Assembly (NCBI GenBank): GCA_973895155.1
Contig: OZ316899.1
Coordinates: forward strand, 3,617,455-3,681,454
Direction: 5' to 3'
Length of the DNA: 64,000 nt
Source: Marsupella aquatica
Lineage: Eukaryota; Plantae; Marchantiophyta
Both the position numbers and the translations under genes were made by a program. Under the pieces are notes generated by a model that saw only the letters and a program-made list of their open reading frames with translations, ran no database searches and was not told where the DNA came from. Below are positions 2,848-43,494 of this stretch, one piece after another. The stretch's first letter is position 1; every line of letters begins with the position of its first letter.

Positions 2848-5511
2848 TCAGAGAATGAGTCAGAGTCAACAAGTTTAGAAGGTGGAGTTGAACCAACCAA
2901 CGATGATGTTGAGAGTAGGATGGAAATCTCCAGAATTTCAGGTAGGTTCTCCATGAGAGTTGTGAACAAAATTCAGACACTTTGTCCTTCTCTCCTTTCT
3001 ACGCGAGAGTAGTGTAGAGCCTTTCCAGTATTTTGGGTTAACTTTGAGTTGTTTGGTCTTTCCTCCCAGGAGTATGAAACACTTGCAAAAGTTACGTTAA
3101 AGGTGAATAGCATCAGCGAGTACAATTGGATTTTGTTTGCTCCAAAGAAGCTCTACTCTTTATGGAGGGAGGTTTGCAATACTTGGCTCAAGGGTAATCT
3201 TTTGGATTCAACCGGACAAATGATAGGAAAATCGAAAGAAGCAAAATAGTTGACAGGGACAACATTCCGGGTTTTTGAGGGTGCCGTAGAATCCGACATC
3301 TTGGAAATCCTCCACAAAGTGAATTTGGGGGAGGTGCTTTTGATGAAAAAGAAACATGCTCTGATTGATCTTCCCGCCATGTCAGAATTGACAAGAAAAG
3401 CAAAGTATATTGACAAACTTAAGGGGGCAATACTTCGATTCTATCGGGAGAAGTACGAAGGGGTTTTCTTGCAAGGATCAACTTGGGGTGATGTAGTTCA
3501 GCAATATAATTTCACTGATGAGGAATTGGATCGTTGTTGTGCAATGGTGGACATTGGATATTTCAAGAGCCTTGTGAAGGTGTCATTAAAAGCAGAGATG
3601 TCGGAGCCACTGAAAAATAGGTTGAGAAATATTCACCAAAAGAGGTTTGGCGGCCATCTCCGCGCAAGGATGGATCCTTACCGAGTTTTCTATACTGGAA
3701 ATTTGCTCGCGTCTGCTGATCCTCCTTTGATTCGGCTAGCTGCAAGGAGTCAATATTGGCATCTCTAGCGATTGTTGATTTGACCCATACTGGAAAACCG
3801 GTTTGGACGCAGTCCGAAATCTTGAACTTCTTGAAGATCGTCGTGAATATCCCAACAAATGATCTGGTAACAGTTGTTTTTTTTGTTCGTCCTGGTATTA
3901 TTCTTGCAAGAATAATTGAAGTTGTTCGAGATCTCCCAAAGAACTCTAATGCGCACCTTGAATATGGTTTGTTCATGAGGAGTTCTTTGGTTAATGCTCC
4001 TTTGCAACACATGAGAGGCAATGCGGACATGGTTCTTTTCCTTGGCGTCTCCCAAGATCGGGTTCTTGATTGGGAAAAGCATTTCAAGGATTTTACCGGT
4101 CACTTTGTGTTGGAGGAGTCCGACCTCGAGGAGACAATCAAGCCAAGTCGATAGGATTATTCCGATATTTCGAAGGAAGATATGTAGGAGAAAAAAGGGA
4201 CACATTGATCTCACGACTTGAAGGCCTTGTTCCTTTCAAGTTGACGACTGGACGGCCATTCATAGTGAATATTAAGCCCAGTCGCATCCTACAGAGTTTT
4301 ATTCATGCATTTTCTTCAAGGGAGGAAATTATCCTGGATTTTTTCACAGGAGGGCAGGTACTGAAGAATGCATTGATGCTTGAGCGGGGTATAGCAACGG
4401 AGACAAGAAACAGGTAAACAAGAATTTTTTTTCCTGTTTTTAATATGCTGTTACCAGGAAAAAATCACTGTTACTAGGAAAAATGACAATTTAAAAATGT
4501 CTCCTAAAACATGTTATTTCCAACAAAAATTAACAATGCAACATTTTTGGCTAGCTTTGGGCGCTACTATTAGCAGCACCGGGCGCTAGCAAAAAAAACT
4601 GGTCGACCGAAAAAAAAATTATTTCAAAAAAAATTCAAAAAAAATTTCCACCCATTTTCTTGTAACCAGTTTTTTTTCCTGTTACCAATTTCTGTTATTA
4701 AATCCTGTTTCCTATTTGCTGTCTTTTGTAAACACCTCCTTGAGCGTGAGTGTTTTTCATTCTGCTATGACCATGAGGATGTCTCTGACCTCACGGCTTA
4801 TGCAAAGAATCTTAAATTGTTAGTTCCGGTTGCACAGTTTGCCAAATCATTTTGGAAACCTCCTGGCCTTGAAGGGAGTTCAACTCAGAACTCCAATGCT
4901 AGTGGAGCAAAAGAGGGCCAGCATTATCAGATTGCCGATACAGTTTTACATTACGTCGGGGTGGAAGCGGAGGAAAAGTTTCTAAGTTCCATTGGGGAGA
5001 TGAGAATTGGTCCATCAGTCGTTCCAATTGCAAGTCGTGAAGGATTTCCTCTTCTTATGGCTGAAGGAGGGTATGGTTTGGCAGATAATTCTGAAAACTT
5101 ACAGACGAGCACGGGGTTGATTGCGTTCAACAAAACTCTGGAAGATGTTGTGGATGATGTCTCCCTACACACGTATCGTGTAGATCCTCAAAATTTGTTT
5201 GACCCTCCAGGGTTAGAGTGCAACAGAGGTGTTGAGCAATCTCTTCTAGATGATGCTTCAGTTCTTCCAAGTACCCAATTTTTGATGATTGTGAGGCAAA
5301 AACTACACTCGAGGATGTCAAGAAGGGGTTGGTGGATTGTGGACCCTTAAAAGAGATTGTTGTGGAGGAGGTTGGGATTGTGGAAAAATATCACACTCCG
5401 ATTGAATTTCAATGCAATGACAATGTTGACTCTCGTAGCGCTGAAGTAACAGGAGAGAATGATAACTCATTTTCTCTCACATCGAATCTTCCTGAGGTGT
5501 CAGAGAGGTGA
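2848..5511 (+). pseudogene. Cassette 1: helical middle domain + beta-class N6A/N4C DNA methyltransferase-like domain + acidic linker (5' truncated by the Gypsy; stops, frameshifts and a MITE insertion)
   Basis: Frames 3049/3250, 3756, 4070 and 4817 join up. The C-terminus reads KPSRILQSFIHAFSSREEIILDFFTGGQVLKNALMLER|ECFSFC, matching the beta-class pattern KPxxLxxxlIxxxSxxGDxVLDPFxGSGTTxxAAxxLGRxFIGxE. Removing the 352-bp MITE plus one 8-bp TSD (360 nt) restores the frame into ORF 4817-5350. Confidence 0.65.
4387..4738. mobile_element. MITE-like non-autonomous element, copy 1 (8-bp TSD, hAT-like by TSD length)
   Basis: Flanked by the perfect direct repeat CTTGAGCG (4379-4386 and 4739-4746). 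A near-identical copy is at 19107-19432. The terminal inverted repeats are imperfect (AGACA...GAAACAGG / CCTGTTTC...TGTCT). Confidence 0.85.
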
Positions 5512-5619: not shown

Positions 5620-6339
5620 ATGGATAACAAAACGAGGATTGACAATTGCCTTAGTGATCTGTTGGATCAGGATGTGGTTCTAGTCAGGACTAATGGGTGC
5701 CTAATAACTCGTGGACAGATGAGGTGCCTGAGTCCTAGAAATTGGATAAGTTCTGATATTCTAAATGCCTACTTAAGTCTCATAGTGGAGAGGAATGAAC
5801 ATTCCGACAGGGAGCTTCTGAAATACCATGTGTTTGACACTTGGTTCTATACTGCATTGACGTCGAATGGCTACTCTTACCGATCCGTGGAGGCTTGGAC
5901 TTCACAACTGAAATATTTCTTAATTGATTGTCATCGAATATTCGTCCCCATTCACGAAGGTGGCGATCATTGGGCGTTAGTTGTGATTGACATGGAACAC
6001 AAGTATTTAGAATATCTCGATTCTCTGCATAACAATAGGCCAGAGGTTCTTGAAAACTTAGCCAGATATGTCGAGGATGAAATTCAAAGCAGAAGTCACA
6101 AGCAAGTCTTAGCTACTCTATGACCAAAACATAGTCCCAAGGACATCCCAAGACAAACTGATTACTATAATTGTGGTGTGTTCGTTATGAAGTTTGTGAA
6201 CTACCGTAGTTTGGACCTTCCTTTTGATTTCACAGGAGAGGACATAGATTTGGAGAGGAGAGAAATCGTTTTAAGTCTATTCAGGAATAGATTGAGCTTT
6301 CCTCCGCAATACAGTGATTTCTGCACGAGACGCATGTAG
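5620..6339 (+). pseudogene. Ulp1/SENP-type SUMO protease (peptidase C48) domain with one in-frame TGA at 6121-6123
   Basis: Reads WISSDILNAYL, FDTWFY, PIHEGGDHWALVVID...YLDSL, then after the stop PRQTDYYNCGVFVMKF. His, Asp, Gln and Cys catalytic positions are all present. The frame continues to TAG at 6339. Confidence 0.9.
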
Positions 6340-6450
6340 AGGGTGACAGACGGGTTATTTGATTTCAAGGACTGACTTGACTTCAAATGGTCTTTGGTCA
6401 AGACTGTTCCAATGAATAACCATTTGGATTTGATATTTTTATGTTTGCAG

Positions 6451-7508
6451 AGTTTGTTCCCAAACTCCACTCAGAGATCAAGCAAAAGCTCTTGATTTTT
6501 GACCTTAATAAGGTTTGTTTCAATTCCGTAAAGAGTAAAAGCTCCGGACCATTTTGGAGGCTCACATCTGTGAGGGGCGTTCACTGGGGAAGACGGGGCG
6601 GGAACACATTTATGTATGTGGAGCGTCCAGGACTTCACAAATTTTTACAAGTGATTTTCAGGTATTACGATGTCGCGATTTGGACTTGCGCGGGAAGGCC
6701 GAGAACAAATGAAATGATGGATCTTGTTTTCAATGATGCTGAATGAAAGCAATTCAAGTTTGTATTCACCCAAGAAGAAACGTTTGACACTGGCTTTTTG
6801 AGGTTAGATATTACGGATGGGAAGGCAAACATACTTCTCAAGGAAATCCAAACTGTTTGGGATCGTTTTGGCAATAGATATGGTCCGACAAATACTGTTC
6901 TCATCGATGACTCTCCTCTAAAGTGTTTTGCGAATCCAAATGTTAACACGTTGTTTCCAGTTCCATTTGTTCACAACATGGGAGGCGACACTTTTCTGAT
7001 GGAGATATTGCTTCCACTTCTTCAAAGAATGCACAATGCTTTTGATGTAAGACACTTTCTGAATGTTAACTACCCAAAATGGTCCGCCTACAATAAGGGT
7101 GAAGCCCAAAGGAGGCATGGTGATATCTTTGCAGGACTCACTCAAGCCTGGGGGCACCGCGTTGCTGGCATCGTCGATAATTTCACTATCCTTGATCACA
7201 CGGCAGACGAGATTTCCTGGGAAGTGAAGCATACCGTGCAAAGTTTGCCACCGGTGCAGGATATGAGTGACCGTGACATCAATTCAATTGCTAAAGGTCT
7301 ACTTGGAGATGGTTATTCTGGCCCATATTTGCAAAATAAGTGGCAATTTGTTTGGGAAGTCCTAAAAACTAGGGACCTTACTTCTAAGTTTAAAAACTTG
7401 TATCCTAAAGACGCTTGCAACCGAGATAGAAAGGTTGATAAGTCAGGAAGTAGACTTACTTGCTCAAATATGTTTTGTAGCAACACACATTCAATGATCG
7501 TTATTTAA
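6451..7508 (+). pseudogene. FCP1/NIF-like HAD phosphatase domain, copy 1, with C-terminal Cys/His motif; one in-frame TGA at 6744-6746
   Basis: Reads KQKLLIFDLNKV, ERPGLHKFL...YDVAIWT and NTVLIDDSPLKCFANP, the NIF/FCP1 motifs. ORFs 6441 and 6798 are one gene. A phase-1 acceptor TTTGCAG ends at 6450. Confidence 0.85.
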
Positions 7509-7698: not shown

Positions 7699-8988
7699 TT
7701 GAAAGAGTGTTCTAGAAATTCCAGTTCCAAGTTTTGGAAACTTCATTTAAGGTTGTTGGATAATGTATTTATTGAATTTGGAAATTTTACCAAGCCACTT
7801 TGGAAAAAAGAATTTCCAGACTTAGTGAAATTACTGATGTCGGAGGAGCCTGGTGTTTTAATTGATAAGGATGTTGCATTTGCTCCCAAGTTTGATTTAG
7901 TCAAAGCAAAGCAGTGGATAGAATCTTTGTCCAAGGCGAGAAAGCTTCCAGCGGTGAATACAAACCCTGTGCCCGAGCAAGCGCCAGAGAAAGCTCCAGA
8001 ACCTACAACAGAGACCGCGGGAACTACAGCAGCAACCTCTCAAAGAGCAGTGGGAAAACAAAAACAAAGCCAAAGGAAACCTCCGGTTGAGAAGAAACTT
8101 CCAGTTGAGAAGCCGGTTGAGAAGCCGAGTACAAGAAGCCAAGTTGAGAAGCCAGTTGAGAAGCCAGTTGAGAAGCCAAGTATGAGAAGCCGAGTTGAGA
8201 AGCCAGTTGAGAAGAAACTTCCGGTTGAGAAGCCAAGTGCAAGTGAAAAGAGACCAAGACAGAAGAAGAAACAGAAAATTGACAGTGCCATCATGGATGA
8301 CACTACAGAAAACCTGACAATGCATTCACAAGATGTGGATGAGCAATTGGACGCTCCTGAGGAGAAGAAGGTCTTAGAAGGTAATGAGGTACTACAACAA
8401 ATGGAGCAATATTATATGTTTGGGATCAATTCGATATTTTCTATTCCCGTAGAGAGTATTTTCCCTGCGTTGGCAAGACTCTGTTACAGAATGTTGAATG
8501 CAGACCATGTAAAGGAGGTGGCCAATTCCATGATAAGAAATCTGGGGCATGAACCACACATAGCAGACTTGATTCCTTACACTGCAAAACATAGAAACCT
8601 AATGCAGTATGACAACATGGAATCAGATAGGAGGGACTTTGTAGCAACCGTGAAAAAGGGCGAGGTTCAATTCCTTGCCATTAGCGGTCAACATTCGGCC
8701 AGAGCAACCAGATGGATTCAAGAATGCGCAAACAAGGATGCCAAGCTAACAACATTGGTGAAAAAGCTGGAATTTTGAAAGTCAAGAATATTATCTCCTC
8801 GAACACCATCGTCAATATTAGTTGAGCATTCAATGCGATCTAATGCTATCAATAGCACGATGGTGTTTCAGTCCTGCTTCAAAGATACAGTCGTTCATGC
8901 CAGGCGACAATTTGTGGAATGTGGAAGACCTAGCCGGCCAAAACATGGGGACAACAAAACAAACGCTCAAGACAATCAAAAGTTTCAA
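7699..8988 (+). pseudogene. Cassette 2, 5' part: N-terminal region, VEKP repeats and ParB/sulfiredoxin-like N-terminal domain; TGA at 8776-8778
   Basis: Reads FSIPVESIFPALARLCYRMLNADHVKEVANSMIRN...QFLAISGQHSARA, resembling ParB-N (ipi..I.p...R.......eLa.SI...G...P....iidG.rR..A). The frame continues past the stop (KSRILSPRTPSSILVEHSMRSNAIN...) to a candidate phase-0 donor at 8989. Confidence 0.6.
8083..8235 (+). repeat. Coding minisatellite, 12-bp core GTTGAGAAGCC(A/G) encoding VEKP repeats
   Basis: Visible tandem copies; the protein reads PPVEKKLPVEKPVEKPSTRSQVEKPVEKPVEKP... Confidence 0.85.
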
Positions 8989-9039
8989 GTACGAAGTGTT
9001 ACTGCTTGATGGGTACAATACCGTAGTTTCTCCATATGT

Positions 9040-9430
9040 GGTTACAATTGAGATGGTAGTCTTTGACCACAAAGCTTCAAGTTTGGTTTGGATTGAGATG
9101 GTCCGAGTCCAAATGGATACATGCACATTCAGTAGAATATTTCCACTGATATCATCTAGTTTTGTGTTGGACTGGGATGGTCCCAGTCCAAATGGATTCA
9201 TGCACATTCAATAGACTATTTCCAATGATATTGTCTAGTTTTGTGTTGGACTAGGATGGTCCCAGTCCAAATGGATTCATGCACATTCAATAGAATATTT
9301 TTCCACTGATACTGTCTAGTTTTGTTTTGGACTAGGATGGTCCCAGTCCAAACTAAATCATGCACATTCAATAGAATATTTCCACTGATATTGTCTAGTT
9401 CTGTGTTGGACTGGGATGATCTCAGTCCGC
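9040..9430. repeat. Tandem array of ~79-bp units, each containing an 11-bp-stem palindrome
   Basis: Units start TGCACATTCA at 9122, 9201, 9280 and 9361, with a degenerate unit before 9122. The first unit has the perfect hairpin TTGGACTGGGA-TGG-TCCCAGTCCAA at 9167-9191. Confidence 0.9.
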
Positions 9431-9492
9431 ACCTGAGTGCATTCAAACAATTGAGTTATGGAGAACTAACAGACTTTCCTTTGCAATTGTAG

Positions 9493-11802
9493 GATTGGTT
9501 GGCTCTTGCAAGAATGACCATGGGAAGGAAAGATTGTCAAAATGTTTACTGGTTACTGTTTGCGGACAATGCTCTTTTTGATTTATGGAGTTTGGTATGC
9601 CAGTCGTGGTTGGATGGGAAACTTCCCGATGGAGTTGGGGTAGAAGGAAATGAGAAGTCTGAAAAAGCAATTATTGTTGCCATGTTTTGATGGTGAGTTG
9701 ATCTCACAACGAGACATCACAAGAATACTGACGCGGGTGAAGTTAGGAAAGGTATTGCTAAAGAAAGATGCCTCTAATAAATCAGACATGCCATCTATAG
9801 AGGAGTTGGCAAAAGATGTGAAGATCGTGCAGAAACTGAAGTCCCTTATTGAAGACTACTATTGCACCAAGGATGCGGTGAATTTCCCGACAAATACTAA
9901 TTGGGGGAAAGTAGTTGAGGTTCTTCCTACGCTAGCAATTGATTCAGAGTTCAGCAGGTGTTGAAGAGCCGCTGGCAAGGTCTATCTTGCCAACCTTTTA
10001 AAGCCAAATCATACACGGGAGAGCGCAATCTTGCCGACGACATTGGTATTCCGCCTAGATGATATATACTACCAGAAATTTGGCGGAGGATCACGTTCTC
10101 GGACCCTACCATGGGTTACATTTTTTAGCAACAATCTCATGAAGACCATTGATCCAAAGTCATTGCAAGAAGCTCCTCCGACCTGCCCTCTTGCCAGTGT
10201 TGATTTTAGCCGGCTTCTGCAAAAATAGTGGACTGAAGAAGAGATTCTTGTTCTCTTTGAATACATTGTGGAGCTTCCACAAAATCCCACGATTGTTGTG
10301 ACGATAACAATTCATCCTGGACAACTTGCACTGAATGTCCATGGTGCCCTTTGTAAATTGGGACAAGAGAAAGCTTTGACCATTCACATTGAGTATGGGA
10401 GTTATTCCCGAGATGATCAACCGCACCCTCATGACTCATGTTGGGGTGGGGGGATTGAAGAAGTTATCTTTGCGGGGATTTCTTGAGATGAAGACGTCAA
10501 TTGGAATGAAGTTTTCAAGCCCAACTATCCAAAGCCAAAATTCTTGTATACTTCAAAGGATGTTGATTACAAAGTATGCAAGATTGACAAGGGAAAGGGG
10601 AAGGCTAAGGAATCAGATGAGGGGACACAAAACGATGACCTAAAAGTGGTTTTGGACCCGGAAGAGACCATCAAGATTATGAATATGGCCCCTCGATTTG
10701 AGACAATTGGCAGTCGCGGAGGGTGGGTTAATCCTCATGCCAAACCCACGCGGATGATCCAAAGGATTATTGAATCCTTGTCAGAACCGGGAGATTTGGT
10801 TCTAGATTTTTTTTCCGGTGGCCAAGTCATGAAGACATCTTTTTTTTGCGATAGGGAATGCTTTGTTTATTGTGACTCTCAGTCTGAGAGGCATTTTGTG
10901 GAAGCTTTTTCTTCCTACCTTTGCGAGAGAGTTCCCTCACTTAAAGCCCATTGTGAATCACTTGCTGAAAATTCTTGACAATGGGCTACCACTGTTGCGG
11001 CTTTAGCTGTCGCTGTTGAATCCGACGGTTATGAGTTTGAAGATGTTGCTGACAAAGTGGCTGAAGGCGTAGAGGCATCAGACGAGGCATATGTCAAGAA
11101 TTTGGATGACCGTGTTGGTCAAGGTGAGCCTTACGATGTAGATGATGATATTGGACTTGCACCAAACCGTTCATCTAGTTTAGATGACATCCCTCCAGGG
11201 CCCAATGAAGTTCAAGTTGATGATAACTTGGACAAGGATGATCCCAATCCAACAACGTCGGGAGGACAGATAGAGCAAATGGAAGGAGCAAGGGTTGATA
11301 TGTTTGATCATCTTTCTTCAACCAATGTGATCAATGAAGGCGCAACGAGGCTTGGAGATTCAAATGAAGCTGAAACTCAAGAATTGACTTTGGGGGAGAT
11401 TGGCGGATTGCCTGACATTCCCATCAATCCAGGAGAAATGCATCAACGGCTGTTGACAACCAGGCAGGTGCTTCAACTTGTCCTAACACACTCTTTTCAG
11501 CTTCTGATGACAAATTGGTGTTCGTTCGTTCACACACGGGGAGTCCTGTTGTCCTTCCGCTCTCAAAAAAGAAAGGGAATAGAGTTGGATCAATTGGATG
11601 GAGGTCATTGGAACGCGACTCACGATGTTACGTGTGGAAAAGTGGGCCAAATAGAGGCCAAGAAATATCATTGGATGTTGCTCCTTCAATTCTCAATAAG
11701 GAGGAGTATAAGAGGGCAAAATTGGGGTTGTTAACTCCTGTTTGGACTTCACCTTATTGGGTAGAACAAAGTACTTCAGATATCAATTTTGAAATCCAAT
11801 AG
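9493..11802 (+). pseudogene. Cassette 2, 3' part: helical middle domain + beta-class N6A/N4C DNA methyltransferase-like domain + acidic linker
   Basis: After one frameshift near 9680, a single frame runs 9650-11734 with four in-frame stops (9964, 10228, 10486, 10978). It reads NPHAKPTRMIQRIIESLSEPGDLVLDFFSGGQVMKTSFFCDRECFVYC. It is collinear with cassette 1, e.g. YWLLFADNALFDLWSLVCQSWLDG vs NWILFAPKKLYSLWREVCNTWLKG. Confidence 0.7.
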
Positions 11803-12943
11803 GAGCTTGGTGCTGACATGATTATTGATGAATATGGATCTCTTATTTCAGAATGAAATTCAGCTTTTGACTTTCTATTTATTCATACCAATCTAAAATA
11901 CTTCTCGGTCTCACAGAATGTGCTCACCAATTAAAGTCTCCATATCCGTCTACACATTGTGAGGCTTCTAAAAATGGTATGTAGGTTAATTTTCTTTTTT
12001 GTCAGCCATTGTCTTGTATTTTTGGACTGAGACAATCCTAATCCAAAGTTCACTTTGGTCTTTTCTCTGAGAATGGTGTTTGGTGCACTTGCAGAATCAA
12101 GACCTGGTCCCGTCAACACTACTACACTATCGGCCCCTTTTGCGAACCCATACACATCACAATCAACAAAGGCCCGATAAACAGAATTCCGGCACTTGCG
12201 AACTAACACGCATCGCTACACCATCCCAAATTGCGAAGTTAAAACCTTCGCACGCGGACCATCGCAACGCCATCGCAACACCATGGCAACTTCCCAACCG
12301 AATTCCCTCGCAACTTGCCGAACACTTGCGAGTTCAAAATTGTTGCAGACGCTTTGCATTATGCCGCACGGTCCTTTGTTACCGACGTTGATTTTTGTGA
12401 AGCTGGAAGGTTCGCTACATGTTTGTGATGGGAATGCGTTCGGTATTTGCGATGTCATGGTGTTGGCAACTAGCAAGCCTTATAAGATCACTCTTATGCA
12501 AAATAAATTTGATGGGGACTTTTGAAACAAATTGGATCGGAACTTGTGATATAGTTTAGGCCAGAAGTTGTGAAGCGTTTGCATTCGCAACTTGTGATGT
12601 TACTTGGTTCTATAATAGCGATCCGAGTCATTTCAGTCTTTCCTAGTTATCCAAGTTCGCAATGGGTTTGCACTTTCATGGGAACATGACTTTCAATCAA
12701 TGTTTTGCGAGGGATTTCTCTTGGCAGTGGACCCAATGTGGAAGGCAAATGTTTTTTATAAGATGGCAAGTATATAGGTGGATATACCAAAATGTTAGGG
12801 CTTGAAGGAACCCAATACACAAGAGGGGTGGCATATCTGATGCCAAGTCACCCTACTCAACATATGCTATCCTAGCTAAGCTCCAGCACGGCTAGTCAGT
12901 GACATATATCTCATGAGCCCGGTCATGAGATTCTACAAGCTAA

Positions 12944-15002
12944 CTAAAATGGACTCTTCCGACCCCGCTTTGTCGGCTTCTTTGCCGGCTTCTTGCCCTT
13001 ATCCTTCCGTGGATGTACAGCCTGGTGCTGACGGGTGTGCGGTGCCTTTCAGCACTGCTGCTCCTACTGCTCCTCCTGCTCCTCCTGCTCCTGCCCATCC
13101 TCCTCCTCATCACCTCCCTCCTGCTCCCCCTCATCATCAACCTGTCTCGATGATGCACGACTACTACCACTACCGCGATGGGATGAACCTACCTCCCAGC
13201 TACTGCCCCCCTCCCTAGAACCACTGGTAAGAGGAGTAGCCCCCTCATCCTCATCATCACTACTACTTGCGTCAGCACCCGACCCCTCAGGCTCATCCAA
13301 ATCATGCATCCGTACACTTAATCAGTTTCTACAAATTAAAAAGGGTCATCCACAATGTTGGCATCACAATTAATTAAACCTTGAACACCTAGATACTTAC
13401 AGTAGCCAACTCGGCATCCACCATCTGAAAGAGGTACTTTCTCCCATGCTCCATCCCTATCTCAATATGTTTCTTGGATATCTTCCTCTTATATTTCCGG
13501 TACTACCATCCACCATAAAACCAAAAATTAAACCCATAGGCTAAACCAAAATTCACAATGCGAGAGGCCTTAGGCCTACAAAAGTTAAACTACTTTGAAA
13601 ACAACTCAAATTCACATTTGCAAAGCTGATGCGTTCACAAAATGCAAAGCCCTAATTTTTGCAAAGGCATTGCGATGGCTTTTGCGATGCAAGTACCTTC
13701 GCAACAGCATCAGAAAATCCAAAAAGAAAAAAGTGCATAATAGATTTTGCGAGGCTCTTGCAAACGGATACGCATTGCAATGGGATCGCAAACTATGATC
13801 CCAAGAGGTTTTTAAAAATGCACAAATTTCCAAGTGTCAATCGTGACCTAAAACAGTGCACAAGCAAGCACATGAGAGCATGGACATTCATGACATTCTG
13901 TTCACTTGCATTACCTCAACTGAGAAAGTAAGGAGGAAAGAGCTTAGGGAGGAGAGGAGACACTCACAAAGTGGGCCTTGAGACCGCGGAGCCCGCCTTG
14001 ACCCAGCTTGTGGACTGGATTGGGGGTGGCTTTCACTCGCTTGGCTGCATCCATGAAATGTTTGGGTGGTCTTCCTTCTTCGTCGACCACCTTTTGCACA
14101 TCAGCTACCTTCTGCTTGAGTCCCTTCAGGTCATGGTCAAGGGGGAGCTTCCCGGTCTCCTTTGCTTTCAGGGATCGAGCTAGTGTATCCTTCCACTGTT
14201 CCAACTCGTGAGTTGCTTTGATTTGCACCTCAATCTTGTAAAATGCATTCCAGATGTCCTCAGTGAATTGGAGGGGCCTGCGCAAACTCCTGTACAATCT
14301 CAAGTCTCTCAGGTGGGCTCTAATCTTCATCCTATCATGGTATCTCATTTGAGACATGGAATTAGAAATCTTGTCTGCCAGCCATTGCTCATCTATGTCA
14401 GCTCCATTACGAAATGCATCCTTGATCTGATTCATCACTCTCTTTCCCTCTGCCTTCTCAACCTTTCCCCATTGCATGCCTTGTGAGAAATTGCTTGTGA
14501 TGATCTGTTTGATGGTGCTCTTAGCCCCTGCATAGGCTAGCTCAGTTGGAGTCCCAGTTGTCTCCAAGGCAATGAATGGAAGATTTTTCCTTGCATCCTC
14601 TTTCTGACGTTGCTCATCTCATTGTTTTCGAATTGCATCCCTCTCCTCTCTTCTCTTCTGTTTTTCTATGGCTTGAGGAGAGGCAACTCCCGACTTAGCC
14701 CTCTCCTCCCTCTTCCTTCTTTTCTCTCTAGCCTTCTCCTCAGCTGCGACCCTCTCTTCCTCGTCTCTAGTAGCTTGCCCTGCCACAATTCCTGTTTGTA
14801 AAACCTGGCCTAAAATGGCACTCAAGGAGGCAAGCCTTGCTGGAGTATTCAAATTTACTTCACCCAACTGTGCAGCACTGAGATGTTGGGCTACTAAGTC
14901 GCTCCATGCATTCTGTTGCTTCTCCTGATTTGCCCCATTGCCACTACCACCAGCACCATGTCCTCCACTCCCACCGTGCTCTCCACTCCCACCGGTAGCC
15001 AT
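12944..15002 (-). pseudogene. TnpA-like (Ptta/En/Spm-type) accessory gene of the nested CACTA, spliced, with stops
   Basis: ORFs 14619-15002 and 13944-14567 are one frame across a TGA. It reads ...RRPLQFTEDIWNAF...PVHKLGQGGLRGLKAHF, followed by a GTGAGT donor. Later small exons end in an acidic/basic tail with TAG at 12944. It shares the H-x-G-x-G-G motif with the outer TnpA (KEHFGRGG). Confidence 0.65.
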
Positions 15003-15354
15003 AGCTCAATCCCTCTCAGGTCTCTCTCGATATTCTCCCCGCGGCCCCTTCTCCTCTCGCTCTCCCGATCAAACAAGGAATGAGCTCGACCCGAGCTCCT
15101 GCCGACACATACGTATTTAAAAAAAAGCTCCTTGCGATCACATTCGCATCACAAACTGCCACCCTATTACCTTCGCAAACTGTCTCGCAACTTGCGATAC
15201 TTTTGTGAAGAACATACCCTCGCTAATCCATCGCAACCCGCAGAAACGCCCAAACATTGCTCTCGGCCTCTGTATTTGCAAAGATGTTGCGAACCCGGGA
15301 GGTTCGCAAAATGTATCTCTAATTTGTGAAGCAATTTGCAAGGCAGGTGATCTC

Positions 15355-16125
15355 GGTTTAGGGTGGGAAACTATCCCAGGTGTTTAAACGGCTCTACAAG
15401 GGTATAACCTAAACCCTTTTAACTCAACATGGATTTGTGAATGGCCAATTACTTTGAAGAAGAGGATTTTAGGTTGTAGTTGGGCTTTGTGTTTTTGTTT
15501 TTGAATCTTAATTGGGTTCTAATTTAACAAAGGGTTTGAGTTTTAATTTGGGGTTTGGATTTAGAAAGGGTTTAGTTTAGGGAGGGTTGTGTTTCAATTG
15601 AAGGGGTTAATTTGGGTTTAGGTTTTAATGTAAGGGTTGGGTTTGACTTTTCACTGATTTCATATTTTTTGCTCTATACATATTTCAGTTTAGGGACATG
15701 GTTTTAATAGAGGGCTTTAGGTTAGGGTCTAAGGTAGGGGTTTGGGTAAGGTTGTAATTGAGAAGTTTGGGTTAGGGTTTAGGGTAGGGGCTTGATTTTG
15801 GTTTAAGTTTAGGGGTTTGGGTTAGGTTTTAGCTGAGGGGTTTGGGTTAGGTATTGAATATAGGGGATCGATGGGTTCAATTATAATTCAGGGTTGTGTT
15901 TAATTTTTAATTTAGATATTTGGGTTAGGATTTAGGGTAAAGGCTTCATAGGTAATGAGGGAGTTTGGGTTATGGTTTCAGATGGGGTTAGAGTTAGGTT
16001 TTAGCTGAGGGATTTGGGTTAGGGTTTGAATGTAGCAGTTGGGTTTTTAGCGTAGGGGTTTTGGCTAGGGTTTAGGGTTTAGGGTTTGGGTAAGGGTTTT
16101 ATATGTTCATGTTTAGGGTAGGTTT
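15355..16125 (+). repeat. Degenerate telomere-like (TTTAGGG/TTAGGG-like) G-rich tract
   Basis: Dense GGGTTT/TTAGGG variants, with a perfect run TAGGGTTTAGGGTTTAGGGTTT near 16066-16087. Confidence 0.8.
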
Positions 16126-16563
16126 TTTTTTCTAATTGAGGTTATGCTTTCTTTATTTCATTAACATGAAGGGGTGGAACACTCTAGGAGTTGCAGGGCA
16201 CTTCCCCATTGTTTTGAAAGTTTTGGGTAATGCATATGCATTGCGAGAGCTCGGGCATCTGAAAGGTAAAGCTTGTTTTCCTGGCATTTTGTATTTTTAC
16301 TGTAACTTGAGGGTCTATCACCCCTTTCTATAGTTTACCATAAGTCATTGCTTAATTCATTGTATATTTGCAGATTTTTCCCTCCTACTTCCAGATTGGG
16401 TTCATCAAGTTTGGACCAAAAGACCTATAGGCATTGTTGAGCCCGGGTCTCATAAAGGTATTTTTTCCTTTCATTTTAGTTTAATATGTCTACGTAGGGA
16501 TTACAAATGATCGTTTTAGCTATTTTTTTACTAACTTGCTATTCCAAATCTTCCACTTGCCAG

Positions 16564-17715
16564 ATGTCTTCATCCTCTACAACTTCCACCACATCAGACT
16601 CCTCCTCTGATGAGGACATAGATCCTCCTCCTCAGCCTGAAACAGCCGCTCGTCGACCTAGTGGTCCACCACACCAACTTTGCAATTGTAAAAAATGTGT
16701 GGGGATGGTTGTCCAAAAGTCATATGTATGTGCAGACCATATTTCTTGATATGGACAACATCGAGGTCTTACACCCAGAGCCTCTTCATCCCATACGGTG
16801 AGTTGTAAACTTACTATGGTTTATTTTTTATTCAATAAATATTGCTAGCGTGATAAGTTGGGGAAGTTCACAATCACTTTGTTAGATTTGTTCCTATAGG
16901 TATCTAATAGGCCTACACCCACGGCACCAACACCCTATGTTCCTTCACAAGGAGTTCTAGATGCTATAGGCTTGGCCCTTTCACAAGCTTTTCGTTTAGT
17001 TGCAGCAGAGCGAAGTGGTGTTGGGACAGTTCAGGATGATGGTATTGTTACATGAGGGAAAAAATGGTCTAAAAGGCAACCTAGAGGGGAAGTTGATCAG
17101 TACACCTGTAGGGTTGATGGTAGGTGGGGACCTTGTACATTCACAAGGAAATGTGTTCCTATCATAAAGGATTGGAATCCTGATTGCCTTGGTTTTCCAT
17201 GTGATATAACCTATGGTGAGGAAATAGAGGTTTGGGGAAGACATTGGATTGTCAAAAGTTCTACACTAGGGGCGAGACATGGGTATGGAATTTTTTCTTG
17301 CCAGGACATCATTGTGGATGATATGGGTGGAAAAGGGCGCTCTCAAGATGGACCAACGTTGTTCCCATATGGTGGACCCATTTACAAGCGGAGACATTGG
17401 AACATGCTCCTTGTACAACACCTTGAGTGGAAGACTTGTGCATTGGACATGGATACTTTTGATGGTTGCACTAGGAAGTATAGTGAACAACGTATAATTG
17501 ATGGTGATCCCATCCATAGTGGAAATATAGCCGGTTTCCTTAACAGTACTGTGGGGACCCGGCCTAAGCGTAGGAAAAACTGTGAATGGGTTTTTGTTGA
17601 TGGTCCCCCTCCAACACCATATGGGCAGAGATATCATCATGGCCATTGTCTAGTTGTAGCTACTAGGACCATCAAGGCCGGAGAGGAGTTGTTTACACAT
17701 TATGAGTGGGATTAG
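16564..17715 (+). pseudogene. Transposase-associated Zn-binding exon (16564-16797) spliced to a SET-domain exon (16900-17715); two TGA stops
   Basis: Exon 1 reads CNCKKC...CADHIS*YG (transposase-associated C/H motif). Exon 2 reads VKSSTLGARHGYGIFSCQDI...GNIAGFLNS...NCEW...VVATRTIKAGEELFTHY, i.e. SET motifs GxG, (R)FxNH-like and GEELxxxY. GTGAGT donor at 16798; TAG acceptor ends at 16899; phase 0 and in frame. Confidence 0.8.
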
Positions 17716-17911
17716 GCTTATTTTAGGGATATGTATTATTTATATGTTCCTTCATGCTTTGTGAACATATATTTTGTAAGTTAGGGTTTACACCCTAAAC
17801 CTATGATGTTCTTTCACATTGTATGTTAATAACATGTGTCGATATTGTTTTTGTTTTATGAGGGATTTAATTTGGAGTTTGATTGTGAATGCTTTATTGT
17901 ATTGTCCATAG

Positions 17912-20900
17912 AATGTGCGACCTAGTCAAGATATGTTGCCAAGGAGGTTGAGAGCTACATATGAAGAAATGGGCATGCCACAAGACGGAGTCACATCATC
18001 AACAAATTCTTCATCCAATGACAGTGACAATGAGGGTTTGCATGAAGGGGCACCTAGGACAGATTTTGAGGTCATGTAGGACCAGGAGACAACCATGGAT
18101 GACTTCATGACAGATTGGTTTGGTGTGGATGTTGATGGTGAAGGACGTGGACCACCCAATGAAGGAGCTCCTCCACCAAATGCTGCACGTGACCCCCAAC
18201 CTCAACATACACCAGAAGGTCAATAACAATGGGAAGAAGCAGAGGCACATGCTAGAACACCTATTTATGGGGGTGCTCGTTTGAATAGACTCTCTGCCAT
18301 CTTGGCATTGATGAATCTTCAGGCAAAACACAAGGCAAGCAATGCCCTTCTATCGGATTTGTTTGCAATTTTCCATGACCTCATGTTACCCAGTGACAAT
18401 GTATCGCCAGGAACTTGGAAGGAGGCAAAGAGAGTTCTATCATTCATTAGTATGGAATATCATATCATTCATGCTTGTGTGAATGACTGCATCCTATATC
18501 ATGAGACCAATGCCAACATAACTAAGTGTCCAATTTGTCATGAGCCTCGATATGACAACAACATGTTGACGGAAAAGGTGCCCAGGAAAACTGTCCGTTG
18601 GTTTCCCATTATTCCTCGATTGTTGCATATGTATCGATGTTCTGACTTGGCAGAATTGATGGTATGGCATAAGACACATCGATCAGAGGCTGGTGTCATG
18701 CGGTTGCCAGTTGACTCCCCTGCTCATAAGCATGTGGAGGCACAATGGTCAGAGTTTGCACATGACCCTCGTCATGTGAGGTTGGGGTTGGCATCAGATG
18801 GGGTTAGCCCCCACTCCCTTGGTGGGAAAGGACGCCCAACATCAGTTTGGCCGGTGGTTGTTATGAATTACAATCTTCCACCATGGTTGTCCATGAAAAA
18901 GGGCTTCTTATTGTTATCATTGATTATCCCATGTCCATCTAAGGTAAAAAACATGGACACCTATTTGACACTATTGGTTGGGGAACTCCAAAAATTATGG
19001 GACGATGTGTGGGCCTATGATGCTCGGAAAACTACAAGGGGATTACCACGTGTCTTCAAATTGAAGGGAATTAATATGTGGACCATGCATGACTATCCTG
19101 GTAAGGGGATATAGCAACGTAGACAGGAAACAGGTAAACAAGAATTTTTTTTCCTGTTTTTAATATGTTGTTACCAGGAAAAAATCACTGTTACCAGGAA
19201 AAATGACAATTTAAAAATGTCTCATAAAACATGTTATTTCCAAAAAAAATTAACAATGCAACATTTTTGGCTAGCTTTGGGCGCTACTATTAGCAGCGCC
19301 GGGCGCTCGCAAAAAAACTGGTCGACCAAAAAAAATAAATTCAAAAAATAAATTCAAAAAAATTCCATTTTCCTGTTACCAGTTTCTGTTATTAAATCCT
19401 GTTTCTTGTTTGCTGTCTTTTGTAAACACCTCCAATAAGGGGTATGGATTGGTGTTTTTTTATGTATTAGAGAGTTTGTTTTAAAAGAAGTCCCTCATAT
19501 TTATGAATGTACATGAACTTTTTAAATCCTTTGACTCTAATTGAGAAAGTTGTTTTGGTTTGGCTTTGTTGCAGGGTTTGGATTTGTTTCAGGGTTACAA
19601 ACTCAAGGGTATAAGGCATGCTCCACTTGTGGTCCAAGCCTTGAAGATATGGCCAAGTACTCAAGATGGCTTCGCAAGATAATCTACCTTGGGCATACCA
19701 AGTTTCTTCCACTTGGACATGAGATGAGGTCTGACCCCCTTCTATTTTAAGACTTTGACATGATCAATGGTGATGAGCGTGACATACCTAAGCGTACATC
19801 CTTTGCACATTGGAAATCCATAGTTGATAGGGTGGCAGACCCTAACGACCCCATGACATTTGATGGAAGTGGGTTGACGAGGTGGAGTATACTAGCCACA
19901 TTGCCGTATTGGCCAGAGTTGAAGATTCATCATTTGTTAGACCCCATGCATATAGAGGGAAACGTTGGGAAGGCTTTGATCAAGCATTTTTATGGAGAAA
20001 AGGACCATAATTTTAGGGAGGCATGCCAGGATCTAGAACGACATCCAGATGTATGCATAACAATTGATGCATCAACAGGGATGGAACACCGTCCTTCAGC
20101 TCCTTGGGTTTTGAGTGTTGGTGAAAGAAGAGAGTTTCGACAACGCATAGGTCAGATGCGGTTTCCTACAGGCTATGGTGCCAATCTCCGGAAAGCTTTT
20201 GGGATGGAGGACAGTCATAAGTGGCCAATGTATCTAAAGACACATGACTATCACCGTTTACTACAACATATACTTCCTGTGGCAATCATAGGCTTGGGCA
20301 GTGAAGAAGTGCAAGACGCCCTATGGTCATTGGAAATATATGAAGAAGAGATCCCACGGATGGAGTATTGGCAGCAGAGGTAGTGTGCAAGTTAGAGAAG
20401 GCCCTCTCTCCTTCCTTCTTTGATTGTCAAGTGCATTTACTTATTCATCTTGTGAGGGAGGTTGCCATTGCTGGTCCAGTGCATTGTCGTTGGATGTATT
20501 GGTTGGAAAGGTATATGGCTGTGTTAAAGGCTTATGTACGGAATCGTGCACGAGTGGAGGGGAGCATGGCAATAGGATACTTGGCAGCTGAGAGTATGTT
20601 CTATTGCAGCAACATCTTAGCTACCATTGATCCTAGTTGTCCACGCAGTTGGATGGAAGAGAAAGAAATGGAGGAGGATCGTTTAACAGGAGCCAAAAAA
20701 ACACGCTTATTCGAGTACTGACCGGAGTGGAGTTGACACAGATGACTACTTTCATGTTGAGTAATAGTACTGTGATGGAAGAATGGAGAGAGTTTTATGA
20801 GGATGCAAAGAGGGAGAGTCATCGCCCAAGGATTTTTCCAAAGTTCCTTGAGTATATGAGGGAGAAAGTACTTTAGTTGGATGCTATGGTGGCCCAAGGT

Positions 20901-21500
20901 GAGAGTGTATCACATTTTCCAGATATGACTCTTGAGGTTCAAACAATTGTTCATGGCCCTTTGAGACTTGTTCAGACCAGAACAACAATGTGGACACAAG
21001 GGAGACATTTCAGGATTTCTGACCTTGATGAGAAGAGGGGTAGAACTTTGACTGTGGAGTTCAAGGGCAGTTCATGCAGGATTCACAAAGTAGCCGCCAT
21101 GACACCAATGTCATCCAAGATGTGGTGCCTCACTATGGGAAGATAGAGGAGATCTTGATTGTATCCTATGATGTGGATACAAAATTTGAAGAGTATGTCT
21201 TCAAGTGTAAGTGGTTCAAAATTCACTTGGTTGGTGAGAATCGCACGGTACTTCTTGATGATTGTGGGTTTACTCGACTGAAGACATCAGCAACTAGCTT
21301 TCAACCATCTCATTGGCAAACATCTAAACCGTTTATATTCCCAAGTCACCTTGAGTAGTGTTTCTATATTCCGTACCCACCAGACCCAGAGGAGTGGTCG
21401 GTTGTTATATCGTATGTGCCACAATCTCATTCCATTATCTGAGAAAAACCTGAAGTTATTATTGTGTCAAACGGAGGAGAGGATGAGGACCAAGTTTGAT
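17912..21500 (+). pseudogene. TnpD-like CACTA transposase (Transposase_21, DUF4218, DUF4216 regions), disrupted
   Basis: Reads IHACVNDCILY...CPICHEPRY, RWFPIIPRL, PRHVRLGLASDG, WPVVVMNYNLPPW, MHDYPG|FGFVSGLQTQGYKACSTC (intron 19101-19574), LDPMHIEGNV, LKTHDYH, FFDCQVHLLIHL, RWMYWLER and YGKIEEI...FKCKWF. Confidence 0.95.
19107..19432. mobile_element. MITE-like element, copy 2, in the transposase intron
   Basis: Near-identical to 4387-4738. The flanks TGGTAAGG and CAATAAGG form a decayed 8-bp TSD with 5 of 8 bases matching. Confidence 0.85.
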
Positions 21501-22253
21501 GCATCACTAGTAGTAAAACTTGTTGTGAGCGTATAATTGTGATTATATTAACTATCATGGTTTTATTTATATTTACCTATTTATTTTCTTCTTTTGTCTT
21601 ACAAACACTTGGACTTTGAAATTTCATTTTACTGCTATATAAGCAACCCTAGCCACTAGAAAAGTTATCCTCATGCATGCCACCTTTTTGAAATCCCTAG
21701 CTTATAACCTAAACACATGCATTCTCCATCTTCTAAAGTATTATCTCAAAAATTTCCATTCTGAAAACTTTGCAAACAACTCTCTTTGCGAAACATTTTT
21801 TGAACCAGTCGGGAATGAATTTATGAACCTCTTGTGAATCCAATTCCATTGGTACTTGTGATACAAATACGTTCTCAAACTTGTGACCAAATTGGCTTTG
21901 GTACTTTGCAACCCAACGTTTTTCACAACACTTTCCAAACATAATAGGTTCACCAACCACTTGTGATCGTATTAGTATCGCTAAATTATGAACCAAAATG
22001 TATCTGAATACGGTCGCGATGGTTGCGGACTCACAAAATCGTTACGAGACAACTAGTATCTAAATGTGTTGCGAAGTCAATAACATCAAAAATTAATTGC
22101 GATGTATGTAGCTTTGCAACGTGAATTTGCGACGATAAGAGCATGGGATATTGTGATGCCTGTTGCATCACAAAATATCTGAAGGTTCTAACATCGCAAG
22201 GCCTTCCCGATGTCAAAAAACACCTTCGCAAAAGGGGCCGATCTGTAGTAGTG

Positions 22254-23270
22254 CAAGCGGAAGTTGCTGATTTTGGACCTTAATAAAATACTTTGGGATT
22301 TTGTTGAATTCCAAAGCAAGGGCACATCCAAGGATATTGTCACCTCAAGTGGAGTGCATTGGGATAGAAAAATGGTATTAGTCGCATGTATACAAAATGA
22401 CCAGGGCTCCATGAGTTTCTTAAGTTGGTTTTTGACAGATTTGACGTTGCAATTTGGACATGTGCTGGGATACCGCAAACAATGAAAATGTTGAACATGA
22501 TGTTCATTGATGAGGAGAGGTCAAAACTCCAGTTCGTATTCACACAGGTGGAAGCTTTTGACACAGGCATTCAAAGGGGTGACATTACAAACGGAAAGGC
22601 AAATGTGCTACTGAAGGATTTTTGGGTGGTATGGAATGCATTTGGAAATCTATATGATGAAACCAACACCCTCCTTGTGGATGACTCCCCCCTTAAGGCC
22701 TTTGCCAACCCAGACATGACCGGATTATTTCCAGTGCCCTACACGCATGCCAATCGTGGAGATAATTTTCTTCTAGCAATTCTTTGGCCATGTCTTGAGA
22801 AACTTTCACATGCAAGTGATATTCGATGTTATCTTCTTCTGAACTCTCCAAAGTGGTCTCTTTTGCACATGAAGAGAGACAAGGCAAAAAATGAGATTAC
22901 TTATGATCAACTTAGCAAGAAATTTGCAGCAAAAATTTGGAAGTCACACTTTACGCATAGTGTGTTGGACCTCAACAACAATGAGATCCCTTGGAATGTA
23001 AAGCACCGTATATGTAGTTTACGTCCTGAGGAGGAACTTGACAATGCACTTGTGAACTCACTTGCTAAATCATTTTTAGGAAATGACTATTCAGGTCCAT
23101 ATAGAGAAAATCCCAGACACTTTTTGCGGGAGATTATAGCCATTAGAAACAACACCACCAAATTTCAACTCCCTGAAAATAAAGGGCATTGCAACCGTGA
23201 CAATAGGGTAGATAGGAAAGGAGACAGGGGCACATGCTCAAATACACATTGTACAAAGCACTTGGTTTAG
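22254..23270 (+). pseudogene. FCP1/NIF-like HAD phosphatase domain, copy 2 (exon begins at 12095, split by the nested CACTA), with C-terminal Cys/His motif
   Basis: Reads KLLILDLNKIL, (R)PGLHEFL...FDVAIWTCAG, NTLLVDDSPLKAFANP, CNRDNRVDRKGDRGTCSNTHCTKH. It is collinear with copy 1 and has a frameshift near 22395. Confidence 0.85.
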
Positions 23271-23489
23271 ATATTTCATTGACTCGTGTTAAGCCCCTTG
23301 GATAGTACTAGAAATGTGTTCGTATTCATTGTAGATTTGCAGATAATTGTATAAAAATATTTTATAATCTATTTGGAATGATGTTATTTTGTTCACACAA
23401 TATCAATGGTCCTTAAATGGGGATGTAATATTTTTATAAGTTACATTTTTATATGTATTATTTATTAATATAATACTAATGTGATTTGG

Positions 23490-23622
23490 CCTATAAAGTG
23501 TACATTTAGAGACACAAAAGTGTACATTTGGGTGTCTTGAAGTGTACATTTGGGGCCATGAAATTGTACATTTCAAGACTCATTTGTGAACAAAAGAAAA
23601 TACATCTTTAATGAATAGATTG
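23490..23622. repeat. Fragment related to the 34001-34338 MITE (AAGTGTACATTT tandem motif)
   Basis: Four AAGTGTACATTT-like copies plus AAAATACATCTTTAATGAATAG, matching the right arm of the MITE at 34250-34332. Confidence 0.6.
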
Positions 23623-23647
23623 ATCAATAGAAAGATATACAAAGACC

Positions 23648-37483: not shown

Positions 37484-37778
37484 TGTTAGGAATTGACTCT
37501 AGTTCCCGACATAGTTAGCTTGGCCTTACTAGGGTTAGTTTTAACCCTAGATTACATTAGGATAAGATCCGCTTAGTTTAGGCCCACTCATCTTGGCCCC
37601 CTTGGGGGGTATAGGCTGGAGGGAGAGCACTCTCTCCCTCATTCTTCACATGTACTCTCATTTGCTATGGAGCCTTCAGGAGTTTCTCCACTCGGGGTGT
37701 CTCGTCGGTGTAGCGTCTGATTGAGTGTCTCTCATGTTTCCGCATTGCTGTCTAGTCCGGAGCCGACGGTTTCTTACA
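37484..37778 (+). repeat. 5' LTR of the young Copia
   Basis: TGTTAGGAATT...TTCTTACA; identical to 43495-43789 except one G/A difference seen near the 3' end. Confidence 0.97.
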
Positions 37779-37780
37779 AG

Positions 37781-37792
37781 TGGTATCAGAGC
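37781..37792 (+). promoter_or_regulatory. Primer-binding site (initiator tRNA-Met)
   Basis: TGGTATCAGAGC lies 2 nt after the 5' LTR. Confidence 0.95.
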
Positions 37793-43427: not shown

Positions 43428-43479
43428 ATATGTTACTTAGTTACATATTGTATATCACCTGACTCATTGTGTGAACTTG

Positions 43480-43494
43480 AGTCAAGGTGGAGAT
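43480..43494 (+). promoter_or_regulatory. Polypurine tract of the young Copia
   Basis: AGTCAAGGTGGAGAT lies immediately before the 3' LTR. Confidence 0.8.

Follow-up and report, generated by a model that had tools for sequence, protein, structure and literature searches.

Does the ParB-methylase-like gene found in a 64,000-nucleotide stretch of the liverwort Marsupella aquatica (contig OZ316899.1, positions 3,617,455 to 3,681,454, hereafter the window) belong to the CACTA transposon beside it, and is its product likely to methylate the DNA of its own element? An initial annotation had placed the gene inside a plant CACTA element, whose family was supposed to have captured a prokaryote-type ParB-methylase module. 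The analysis presented here leads to a different reading, to which a probability of about 0.72 is assigned: the gene at positions 7839-11802 (+) of the window is a truncated and decayed member of a multi-copy family of accessory genes carried by a land-plant DNA transposon, the CACTA element is nested in the cassette to which this gene belongs, and the cassette likely regulates its own element. This reading is built on folds, gene structure, decay, synteny, the CACTA insertion and palindrome arrays, and from these DNA binding, the loss of catalysis and a biological role are proposed.

Positions 7839-11802 form a single spliced gene, in which a ParB-like exon 1 is followed by an exon 2 with a methyltransferase (MTase) fold. 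Both peptide blocks quoted in the initial annotation are present where it had put them: IPVESIFP...YRMLNADHVKEVANSMIRN...LAISGQHSARA is carried by the open reading frame (ORF) 7699-8778(+), and PHAKPTRMIQRIIESLSEPGDLVLDFFSGGQVMKTSFFCDRECF is encoded by ORF 10544-10978(+). The GT donor of the intron lies at 8989-8990 and the AG acceptor at 9491-9492. Since both exons are in frame with codon starts equal to 1 modulo 3, the junction is of phase 0 and joins the two parts in frame, as had been suggested. The joining is backed by an annotated 820-aa protein of Riccia sorocarpa (P0052, KAL3695087.1), which aligns contiguously over the splice junction, with residues 102-312 corresponding to 8359-8982 and residues 311-368 to 9496-9669, and whose alignment extends on to the methylase-like block at 10664-10921. 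The ParB-like and MTase-like parts are thus one spliced gene of a mobile, high-copy family. Its closest named relatives are found in the leafy liverwort Calypogeia fissa, at 60-67% identity.

The extent of the gene, from a breakpoint at 7839 to approximately 11802, is larger than in the initial model and runs past the TGA at 10976. Exon 1 is a 5'-truncated remnant (7839-8988, +), defined by matches to P0052 and other homologues. It begins at 7839 with the last helix of a PH-like N-domain, followed by a K/E/P-rich linker with 12-bp coding repeats (8101-8214), the domain with the ParB/sulfiredoxin (Srx) fold (about 8350-8775) and a conserved helical stretch (8779-8988). After the intron (8989-9492), which holds a 79-bp tandem array, exon 2 (9493-10975) contains a helical linker region and then the beta-class MTase-fold domain (~10085-10975), with motifs X-I, NPHAKPTRMIQRII...LVLDFFSGG, at 10733-10819. 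The gene ends (10976-11802) with the in-frame TGA, an acidic tail (10979-11734) and, read in a different frame, a conserved C-terminal region (11515-11802); this part is collinear with an intact 603-aa ORF at 11992-13800 of the Calypogeia contig L012. In L002, L003, L006 and L008, a ParB ORF is followed by an MTase-like ORF after a gap of 47-305 bp. The intact protein is one of approximately 1,300 aa encoded by two exons, consisting of the PH-like N-domain, a basic linker, the ParB/Srx domain, a helical region, the beta-class MTase fold, an acidic tail and a small C-terminal domain.

Structural comparison indicates that the first block has the ParB/Srx alpha/beta fold, in agreement with the initial call. 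A phmmer scan of 1.8 billion representatives retrieved 60 homologues of the ParB-like piece (best E 7e-39, 52% identity). The piece had no match in Pfam and no sequence match in the PDB, profile searches of PDB sequences with both family alignments returned low-complexity or chance matches only, and a search of IMG/VR and the JGI metagenomes with the ParB alignment yielded no relatives. For the closest homologue, P0001, whose identity to the window domain is 52%, an AlphaFold2 model was computed from an alignment of 42 sequences. Its mean predicted local distance difference test (pLDDT) score was 81, with block means of at least 90 across about residues 310-460. The best PDB matches of this model in Foldseek were Noc, ParB, KorB, PadC, SbnI and sulfiredoxin, and the top 23 rows of the VIA comparison were ParB, Noc, KorB, PadC, SbnI or Srx without exception. 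VIA-align against Myxococcus ParB (7bnk) gave Z 9.9 with a root-mean-square deviation of 2.3 Å over 95 aa. In the same model, residues 12-222 form a PH/PTB-like barrel folded with high confidence, whose PDB matches are weak (Z about 4.5); the window counterpart of this PH-like N-domain is missing upstream of 7839.

The second block is the C-terminal part of a beta-class amino-methyltransferase fold, which binds S-adenosylmethionine (SAM), and here too the initial call stands. The window block matched the Pfam family N6_N4_Mtase (PF01555) with E 3.3e-7 and 30.9 bits, motifs X-I falling on profile positions 163-191, and Calypogeia L012 matched it with 27.4 bits. Both scores exceed the cut-off of 26.7, and the matches cover profile positions 163-215 only. 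Sequence matches of the window block in the PDB were M.RsrI (E 3.6e-4), M.MboIIA, CcrM and M.PvuII, while the fern exon-2 ORFs had no match at all in the Pfam scan. A word-based protein search with the exon-2 piece of contig L005 retrieved the query itself only, and the pattern CACTACAAGAAAA retrieved nothing useful. Between the fern alignment and three phage PF01555 enzymes, hhalign aligned motif I only (E 0.025), so that structure was needed. A second AlphaFold2 model was therefore made from an intact 593-aa fern ORF homologous to exon 2 (pLDDT 79.6). Its top 50 Foldseek and VIA matches were exclusively beta-class DNA amino-methyltransferases or MT-A70 enzymes, including M.MboIIA with Z 16.6 (188 aa aligned from chain residue 1), M1.HpyAVI with E 1e-6, and further CcrM, RsrI, PvuII and rotifer N4CMT. 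The best AlphaFold DB clusters for this model were eukaryotic proteins named "DNA methylase N-4/N-6 domain-containing", aligned over nearly the full query including the helical region.

The catalytic side of this fold is degenerate. The order of motifs is that of the beta permutation, in which motif IV precedes X-I, and this also holds for the window, where DFSR is at 10202 and motifs X-I at 10733. The position of motif IV was located through the strand-helix-strand unit, matched one-to-one between the model and canonical enzymes, and fern D252-LHG sits at the DPPY position in the AlphaFold2 model. Control phage enzymes read DPPY or SPPY there, and none of the family copies read conforms to (D/N/S)-P-P-(Y/F/W). 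The gene described here, referred to as copy 2, has DFSR (10202-10213), as have two Calypogeia copies; contig L005 has DFSW, a divergent second copy in the window (copy 1) DLTH, ferns DLHG or DARG, and L006 DTTS. The string SADPP, at about 3745 in copy 1, was considered as motif IV and ruled out, since alignment with copy 2, Calypogeia and ferns puts the motif at DLTH downstream. The motifs on the SAM side are better preserved, namely N/H-P-x-A-K-P (NPHAKP in the window), DFFSGG as motif I (likewise in the window) and an acidic residue that follows strand 2; HPxxKP is lost in the fern clade, and according to hhalign the GxG loop of motif I is shorter by one residue. Because the DPPY position is degenerate, canonical N6-methyladenine (6mA) or N4-methylcytosine (4mC) activity is doubtful, and with it the earlier proposal that the element marks its own DNA in this manner. 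Judged by its motifs, the domain has probably lost canonical N6A/N4C catalysis and retained SAM or DNA binding, and is most likely a non-catalytic SAM-/DNA-binding module or one that acts on a non-canonical substrate.

One alternative starts from the same motifs. It accepts a cassette unrelated to CACTA and supposes that the MTase-like domain does catalyse methylation, of DNA or another substrate, by means of a non-canonical motif IV (D-F-S-R/W). The conserved motif X, DFFSGG and acidic residue would suit such an enzyme, as would the identity of DFSR between the window and two Calypogeia copies, the resemblance of DFSW in L005 to the DPPW of MT-A70 enzymes, and the long intact ORFs which ferns and liverworts maintain. 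However, motif IV varies by lineage (DLHG, DARG, DTTS), unlike a conserved catalytic site, and the shortened GxG loop of motif I also speaks against activity. Moreover, no characterised amino-methyltransferase is known to lack both prolines of motif IV, and degenerate motifs such as the EPPL of METTL14 are inactive, both of which count against the enzyme. An active MTase-like domain is consequently regarded as unlikely.

Palindrome arrays in and around the gene make binding of its own DNA by the ParB-like protein plausible, as far as sequence can tell. In the intron, a 79-bp unit is repeated in tandem 4.4 times (9080-9428), and every unit carries the palindrome GGACTGGGA-TGG-TCCCAGTCC, which gives five intron sites between 9090 and 9428. 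A pattern search with three mismatches allowed found 7 sites in the window, five of them these intron sites, against 0.02 expected, and a weak site lies just upstream of the start of the adjacent phosphatase gene (12024-12044). In Calypogeia L012, a different palindrome, GCCTCGATAC-N-GTATCGAGGC, occurs in 25 copies at 36-bp spacing, which are distributed over the region separating the divergent genes, the sequence ahead of the ParB ORF, the equivalent intron and the stretch that precedes the NIF phosphatase gene. L013, L005, the fern contig L008 and Riccia each have a recurrent palindrome of their own at corresponding places. Palindromes which belong to each lineage and occupy conserved positions are as expected of parS-like sites, and the arrays are accordingly treated as candidate parS-like sites of the ParB-like protein.

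The CACTA element was inserted later, into the NIF gene of the cassette, which makes its presence a nesting event and not cargo capture. It is a complete element of 10.1 kb (12117-22253, +), with terminal inverted repeats (TIRs) CACTACTACA..ATCGGCCCCTTTTGCGAA and a 3-bp target site duplication (TSD), CAA/CAA. The TIRs match at 28/30 positions, the 30-bp inverted match has an E-value of 1.9e-5 in local inverted blastn, and the CAA duplication is perfect; an initial scan for TIR pairs (at least 15/20 matches) had missed the pair because of an indel. The ParB-methylase-like gene ends at about 11802, and the 5' TIR starts at 12117. Between them, at 12055-12116 (+), lies the start of an NIF/FCP1-like phosphatase gene, whose first ~20 codons are separated by the element from the rest. 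When translation is carried through the empty site, the result is MVFGALAESRPGPV|KRKLLILDLNKI, in agreement with the start of the Calypogeia NIF protein, MCFAE..SPRP..RRKLLILDLNKI. NIF homology in the window resumes only at 22255, and the remainder of this phosphatase gene (cassette copy 2, 22257-23267, +; Pfam NIF E 2.4e-10) has 60% aa identity to the NIF located ~500 bp downstream of the Calypogeia ParB-MTase gene. Since the NIF N-terminus is restored across the empty site and the gene lies outside the TIRs, CACTA was inserted into the cassette, and the ParB-MTase gene is not its cargo. Within the element, a SET exon (17056-17712, Pfam E 1e-6) precedes the TnpD transposase, which includes Transposase_21 (18281-19111) and DUF4218 (20344-20718). 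Minus-strand ORFs are also seen inside it (13944-15002).

The arrangement of related cassettes points in the same direction. Two Calypogeia loci are collinear with the window, with the ParB exon, intron, MTase-like exon, tail and, ~0.5 kb further on, an NIF/FCP1-like gene. The order of ParB ORF, MTase-like ORF and NIF is also found in the fern-like contigs L002, L003 and L008 (with SET added), in L006 and in Riccia. In the two Calypogeia loci, L005 and Riccia, a DUF7869 reading frame of ~1,300 aa stands head-to-head with the ParB gene; the DUF7869 ORFs, all on the minus strand and recognised by Pfam, are at L012 3867-7624, L013 3491-7247, L005 4-3603 and L001 3207-4991. This protein matches Pfam with E 1e-38 and has a DDE-like signature, DN..NKN..GHTHEDVD ("DNSEKDNKN...GHTHEDVD"). 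A PDB sequence search with the DUF7869 ORF returned nothing, and a literature search found no paper mentioning DUF7869. In the ESM Atlas, DUF7869 clusters occur in Streptophyta and Haptophyta, and a look-alike cluster without this family occurs in Chordata. From its signature and position, the DUF7869 protein is probably the transposase of the home element, an unclassified giant liverwort DNA transposon. Of the features of an accessory cassette of the algal kind, the multi-copy state and the repeat arrays are present, and the linkage, seen in four relatives, is to DUF7869, a putative transposase.

It follows that the capture of a prokaryote-type ParB-methylase module by a CACTA family, which then marks its own DNA with 6mA or 4mC, is highly improbable. 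Transposase_21 does lie on the same strand, 7 kb downstream, and red-algal Plavaka elements of the CACTA superfamily hold PF01555 and ParB accessory genes. Against this, the gene is outside the TIRs and TSD (12117-22253), the element splits the NIF ORF of the cassette, and DPPY is absent. Furthermore, no Transposase_21 is present within 4-10 kb of flank per side of the Calypogeia, Riccia and L005 copies, which are paired with DUF7869 instead. For this copy, the location inside a CACTA transposon that was originally proposed is already contradicted.

A conserved non-coding motif block accompanies the cassette. Downstream of NIF, at 23485-23620 (+), AAAGTGTACATTTGG is repeated three times at 22-bp spacing, followed by ..CTTTTAATGAATAG, and the block recurs at window 34021-34335, L013 16148-16335 and L012 3004-3397. 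It follows NIF in Calypogeia L013 and has the same orientation at the left ends of L012 and L013, and it may mark the ends of the element. The AGTGTACATTT block was also considered as a CACTA subterminal repeat; this was ruled out because it also flanks the Calypogeia cassette, which is free of CACTA.

The state of the window copy was assessed from its sequence together with four public runs representing two coded organisms. The runs hold the stretch as hundreds of short contigs (147-948) with 90-99% identity, and the summed depth is 10^3-10^4 from 7781 onward versus 10^2-10^3 before 7781. The high depth and the hundreds of contigs identify a high-copy repeat. Contigs from three runs diverge, with loose ends, upstream of 7839, and their diverged upstream sequence encodes the missing N-domain, so that the window copy is 5'-truncated at 7839. 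It can be observed that this copy has five in-frame stops (TGA at 8776-8778, 9962 and 10484, TAG at 10226 and TGA at 10976) and two frameshifts. In other copies C is read at 8776, 9962 and 10484, meaning that these stops are CGA-to-TGA changes in the window, and at the frame change near 9682 one other copy has 8 extra bases. That the family is instead a host gene family or a randomly captured fragment without transposon function, as might be thought from members annotated as ordinary hypothetical proteins in Riccia and Calypogeia and from one Calypogeia copy 3 kb from the host gene VIT1, is barely credible in view of the depth in thousands and the hundreds of diverged contigs, the several copies per genome, the linkage to NIF, DUF7869 and palindrome arrays conserved over liverworts and ferns, and the retrotransposon or other transposable-element debris around every copy examined.

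The decayed accessory gene is taken to have reached its present form as follows. The cassette lost its 5' part at 7839 and gathered stops, at least three of them by CGA-to-TGA change, and frameshifts; afterwards the CACTA element inserted into its NIF gene. In intact copies, the ParB-like module may recognise, as ParB does parS, the lineage-specific palindromes that occur within the intron, in the region of the divergent promoters and ahead of NIF. The MTase-like domain, with its SAM-pocket motifs kept (N/H-P-x-x-K-P, DFFSGG and the acidic residue) and DPPY gone, would serve as a non-catalytic SAM or DNA binder or act on a non-canonical substrate. Together with the phosphatase, the cassette probably acts on the chromatin or transcription of its own element.

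Several points weigh against this reading. Box II of the ParB-like domain does not have the GERRxRA motif of the CTP clamp. It reads GQHSxRAA, and the family consensus is A-I-S-G-Q-H-S-A-x-A-A in its invariant columns, both arginines being replaced, by H and S. Since box II is G-Q-H-S-x-R-A-A and not GERRxRA, CTP-clamp behaviour of the domain is unlikely to judge by this motif; box II is here nearer to the GCHR of Srx and the DGQHR of DndB-like members than to that of canonical ParB. A helix-turn-helix domain is not demonstrated in the ParB-like protein, and an alternative role for the palindromes would be as elements of the transposase or of a promoter. The proteins modelled are homologues, at 52% identity in the case of ParB and a fern ORF in that of the MTase, and not the window protein. 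The loss of catalysis is deduced from a single motif, and DFSR, being shared by the window and Calypogeia, could mean a working non-canonical site. DUF7869 is only a putative transposase, no DUF7869 homologue is present in the 64-kb window, and the flanking motif blocks are direct rather than inverted. Finally, the splice joint 8988/9493 was not seen in the contigs of the run searches, the runs being of unknown kind and the contigs containing the intron; the runs found look DNA-like and offer no transcript support.

A more far-reaching picture can also be drawn, which is regarded as quite doubtful. Land plants (liverworts, ferns and probably charophytes) would host a giant DNA transposon with a DUF7869 transposase, whose ParB-MTase-like protein would load on element-specific parS-like arrays and, through a non-canonical (DFSR/W) SAM-dependent activity and a partner resembling a C-terminal domain (CTD) phosphatase, set a private chromatin or DNA mark; the 4mC enzymes of liverwort sperm, MpDN4MT1, could then be domesticated relatives of this cargo.

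Transposon proteins that recognise or modify their own element are rare, the VANC proteins of VANDAL elements being the classic plant case. Accessory genes of the present kind are already on record for transposons of red, green and brown algae. Petroll et al. 2025 (10.1101/2025.02.11.637652) described PAG2 (PF01555 with SET) and PAG3 (ParB-like with 2-oxoglutarate (2OG) oxygenase) in red-algal Plavaka transposons of the CACTA superfamily. These resemble the land-plant cassette in being transposon accessory genes with ParB-like and PF01555 domains, in the best structural match of PAG3, which is also M. xanthus ParB (7BNR/7BNK), in the tandem inverted-repeat arrays next to the ParB gene, in the SET link of PAG2, seen here in the fern L008 cassette, and in the movement of the cassette between transposon superfamilies. 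In contrast, the ParB and MTase folds are here fused in one protein, without 2OG oxygenase, and the NIF/FCP1 phosphatase partner, the degenerate motif IV, the land-plant hosts and the DUF7869 neighbour are further differences.

Dinatale et al. 2025 (PMC12477816) reported a 1104-aa protein with ParB-like and DNA methyltransferase parts in Sola1-1_Ec32 of Ectocarpus, proposed it to bind and modify its own element, and cited green-algal transposon cases from Iyer et al. 2011. As in the land-plant family, one large protein combines the ParB-like and N6A/N4C MTase parts, and within a giant DNA transposon its gene lies on the other strand from that of the transposase, in land plants the putative one. 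Compared by description, the Ectocarpus protein is a predicted active 4mC/6mA enzyme, whereas the land-plant family is without DPPY and has the PH-like N-domain and NIF partner in addition. The ParB_N-N6_N4_Mtase fusions of phages and plasmids likewise place a ParB N-terminal fold before a beta-class MTase, and phage fusions are the nearest named ESM Atlas clusters to the Riccia homologue after its own Streptophyta ones, with scores of 0.70-0.73 that serve as leads only. However, the phage enzymes measure ~400 aa, have preserved DPPY and FxGSG, and lack the PH-like domain, the helical insert and the acidic tail; a tblastn-level search of IMG/VR gave no viral relative of the land-plant family. 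MpDN4MT1a/b of Marchantia and rotifer N4CMT share the beta-class MTase fold (8s9o versus the fern model, Z 14.2), and MpDN4MT1, like the ParB-MTase-like family, occurs in liverworts. Unlike the repeat-borne gene with DFSR described here, MpDN4MT1 is a sperm-expressed host gene which keeps TSPPY, and its paper mentions no ParB domain.

Other features of the surroundings should also be recorded. Copy 1 is a divergent exon-2 paralogue (3013-4414, +; ~35% aa identity, PF01555 E 0.017), frameshifted and without the upstream ParB part, with DLTH as motif IV and ILDFFTGGQ as motif I. Its 3' end is interrupted by a ~330-bp repeat (4386-4740), of which a 95% identical copy (19106-19434) lies in an intron of the CACTA transposase, and which is likely a small non-autonomous element. 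The NIF gene of cassette copy 1 is at 6441-7508 (+; Pfam NIF 2.6e-8 and 1.2e-5), and between it and the MTase-like copy 1 lies a Ulp1/C48 protease fragment (5620-6123, Peptidase_C48, E 7e-20), which is not in the Calypogeia cassette. The motif block that follows NIF is immediately succeeded by the C-terminus of a second CACTA transposase, truncated at its 5' end (23624-24872, DUF4218, E 2.5e-10). In the fern-like L008, a SET-domain gene follows NIF in the cassette (9817-10296), and in an Adiantum gene model (P0089, 762 aa) a SET domain is combined with part of the MTase-like region. Ferns thus have SET associated with the cassette, whereas in the window genome it sits on the CACTA element. A Copia long terminal repeat (LTR) retrotransposon at 37484-43790 has 296-bp LTRs (37484-37779, 43495-43790) that are 100% identical and intact gag-pol ORFs (39415-42885), and looks like a very recent insertion. 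A CLASP gene located at 57728-59764 marks the window as land-plant DNA.

The annotation of this locus is corrected by these results, CACTA being a later insertion into the cassette and not its carrier. A literature search found no land-plant report of ParB/methylase transposon accessory genes. The claim of novelty made initially was overstated in that ParB and PF01555 accessory genes are published for algal transposons, including Plavaka. What is new is the land-plant range, the fused single protein, the degenerate motif IV, the NIF partner, the DUF7869 neighbour and the palindrome arrays, peculiar to each lineage, of the intron and the intergenic spacers. ParB/methylase cassettes, so far described in algae only, are hereby extended to liverworts and ferns, in which the methylase fold has lost its canonical catalytic motif while the gene remains intact and conserved. 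The phosphatase partner is fixed, and each lineage has its own palindrome arrays at the same positions, through which the binding of parS-like sites by ParB-like proteins of eukaryotes becomes directly testable.

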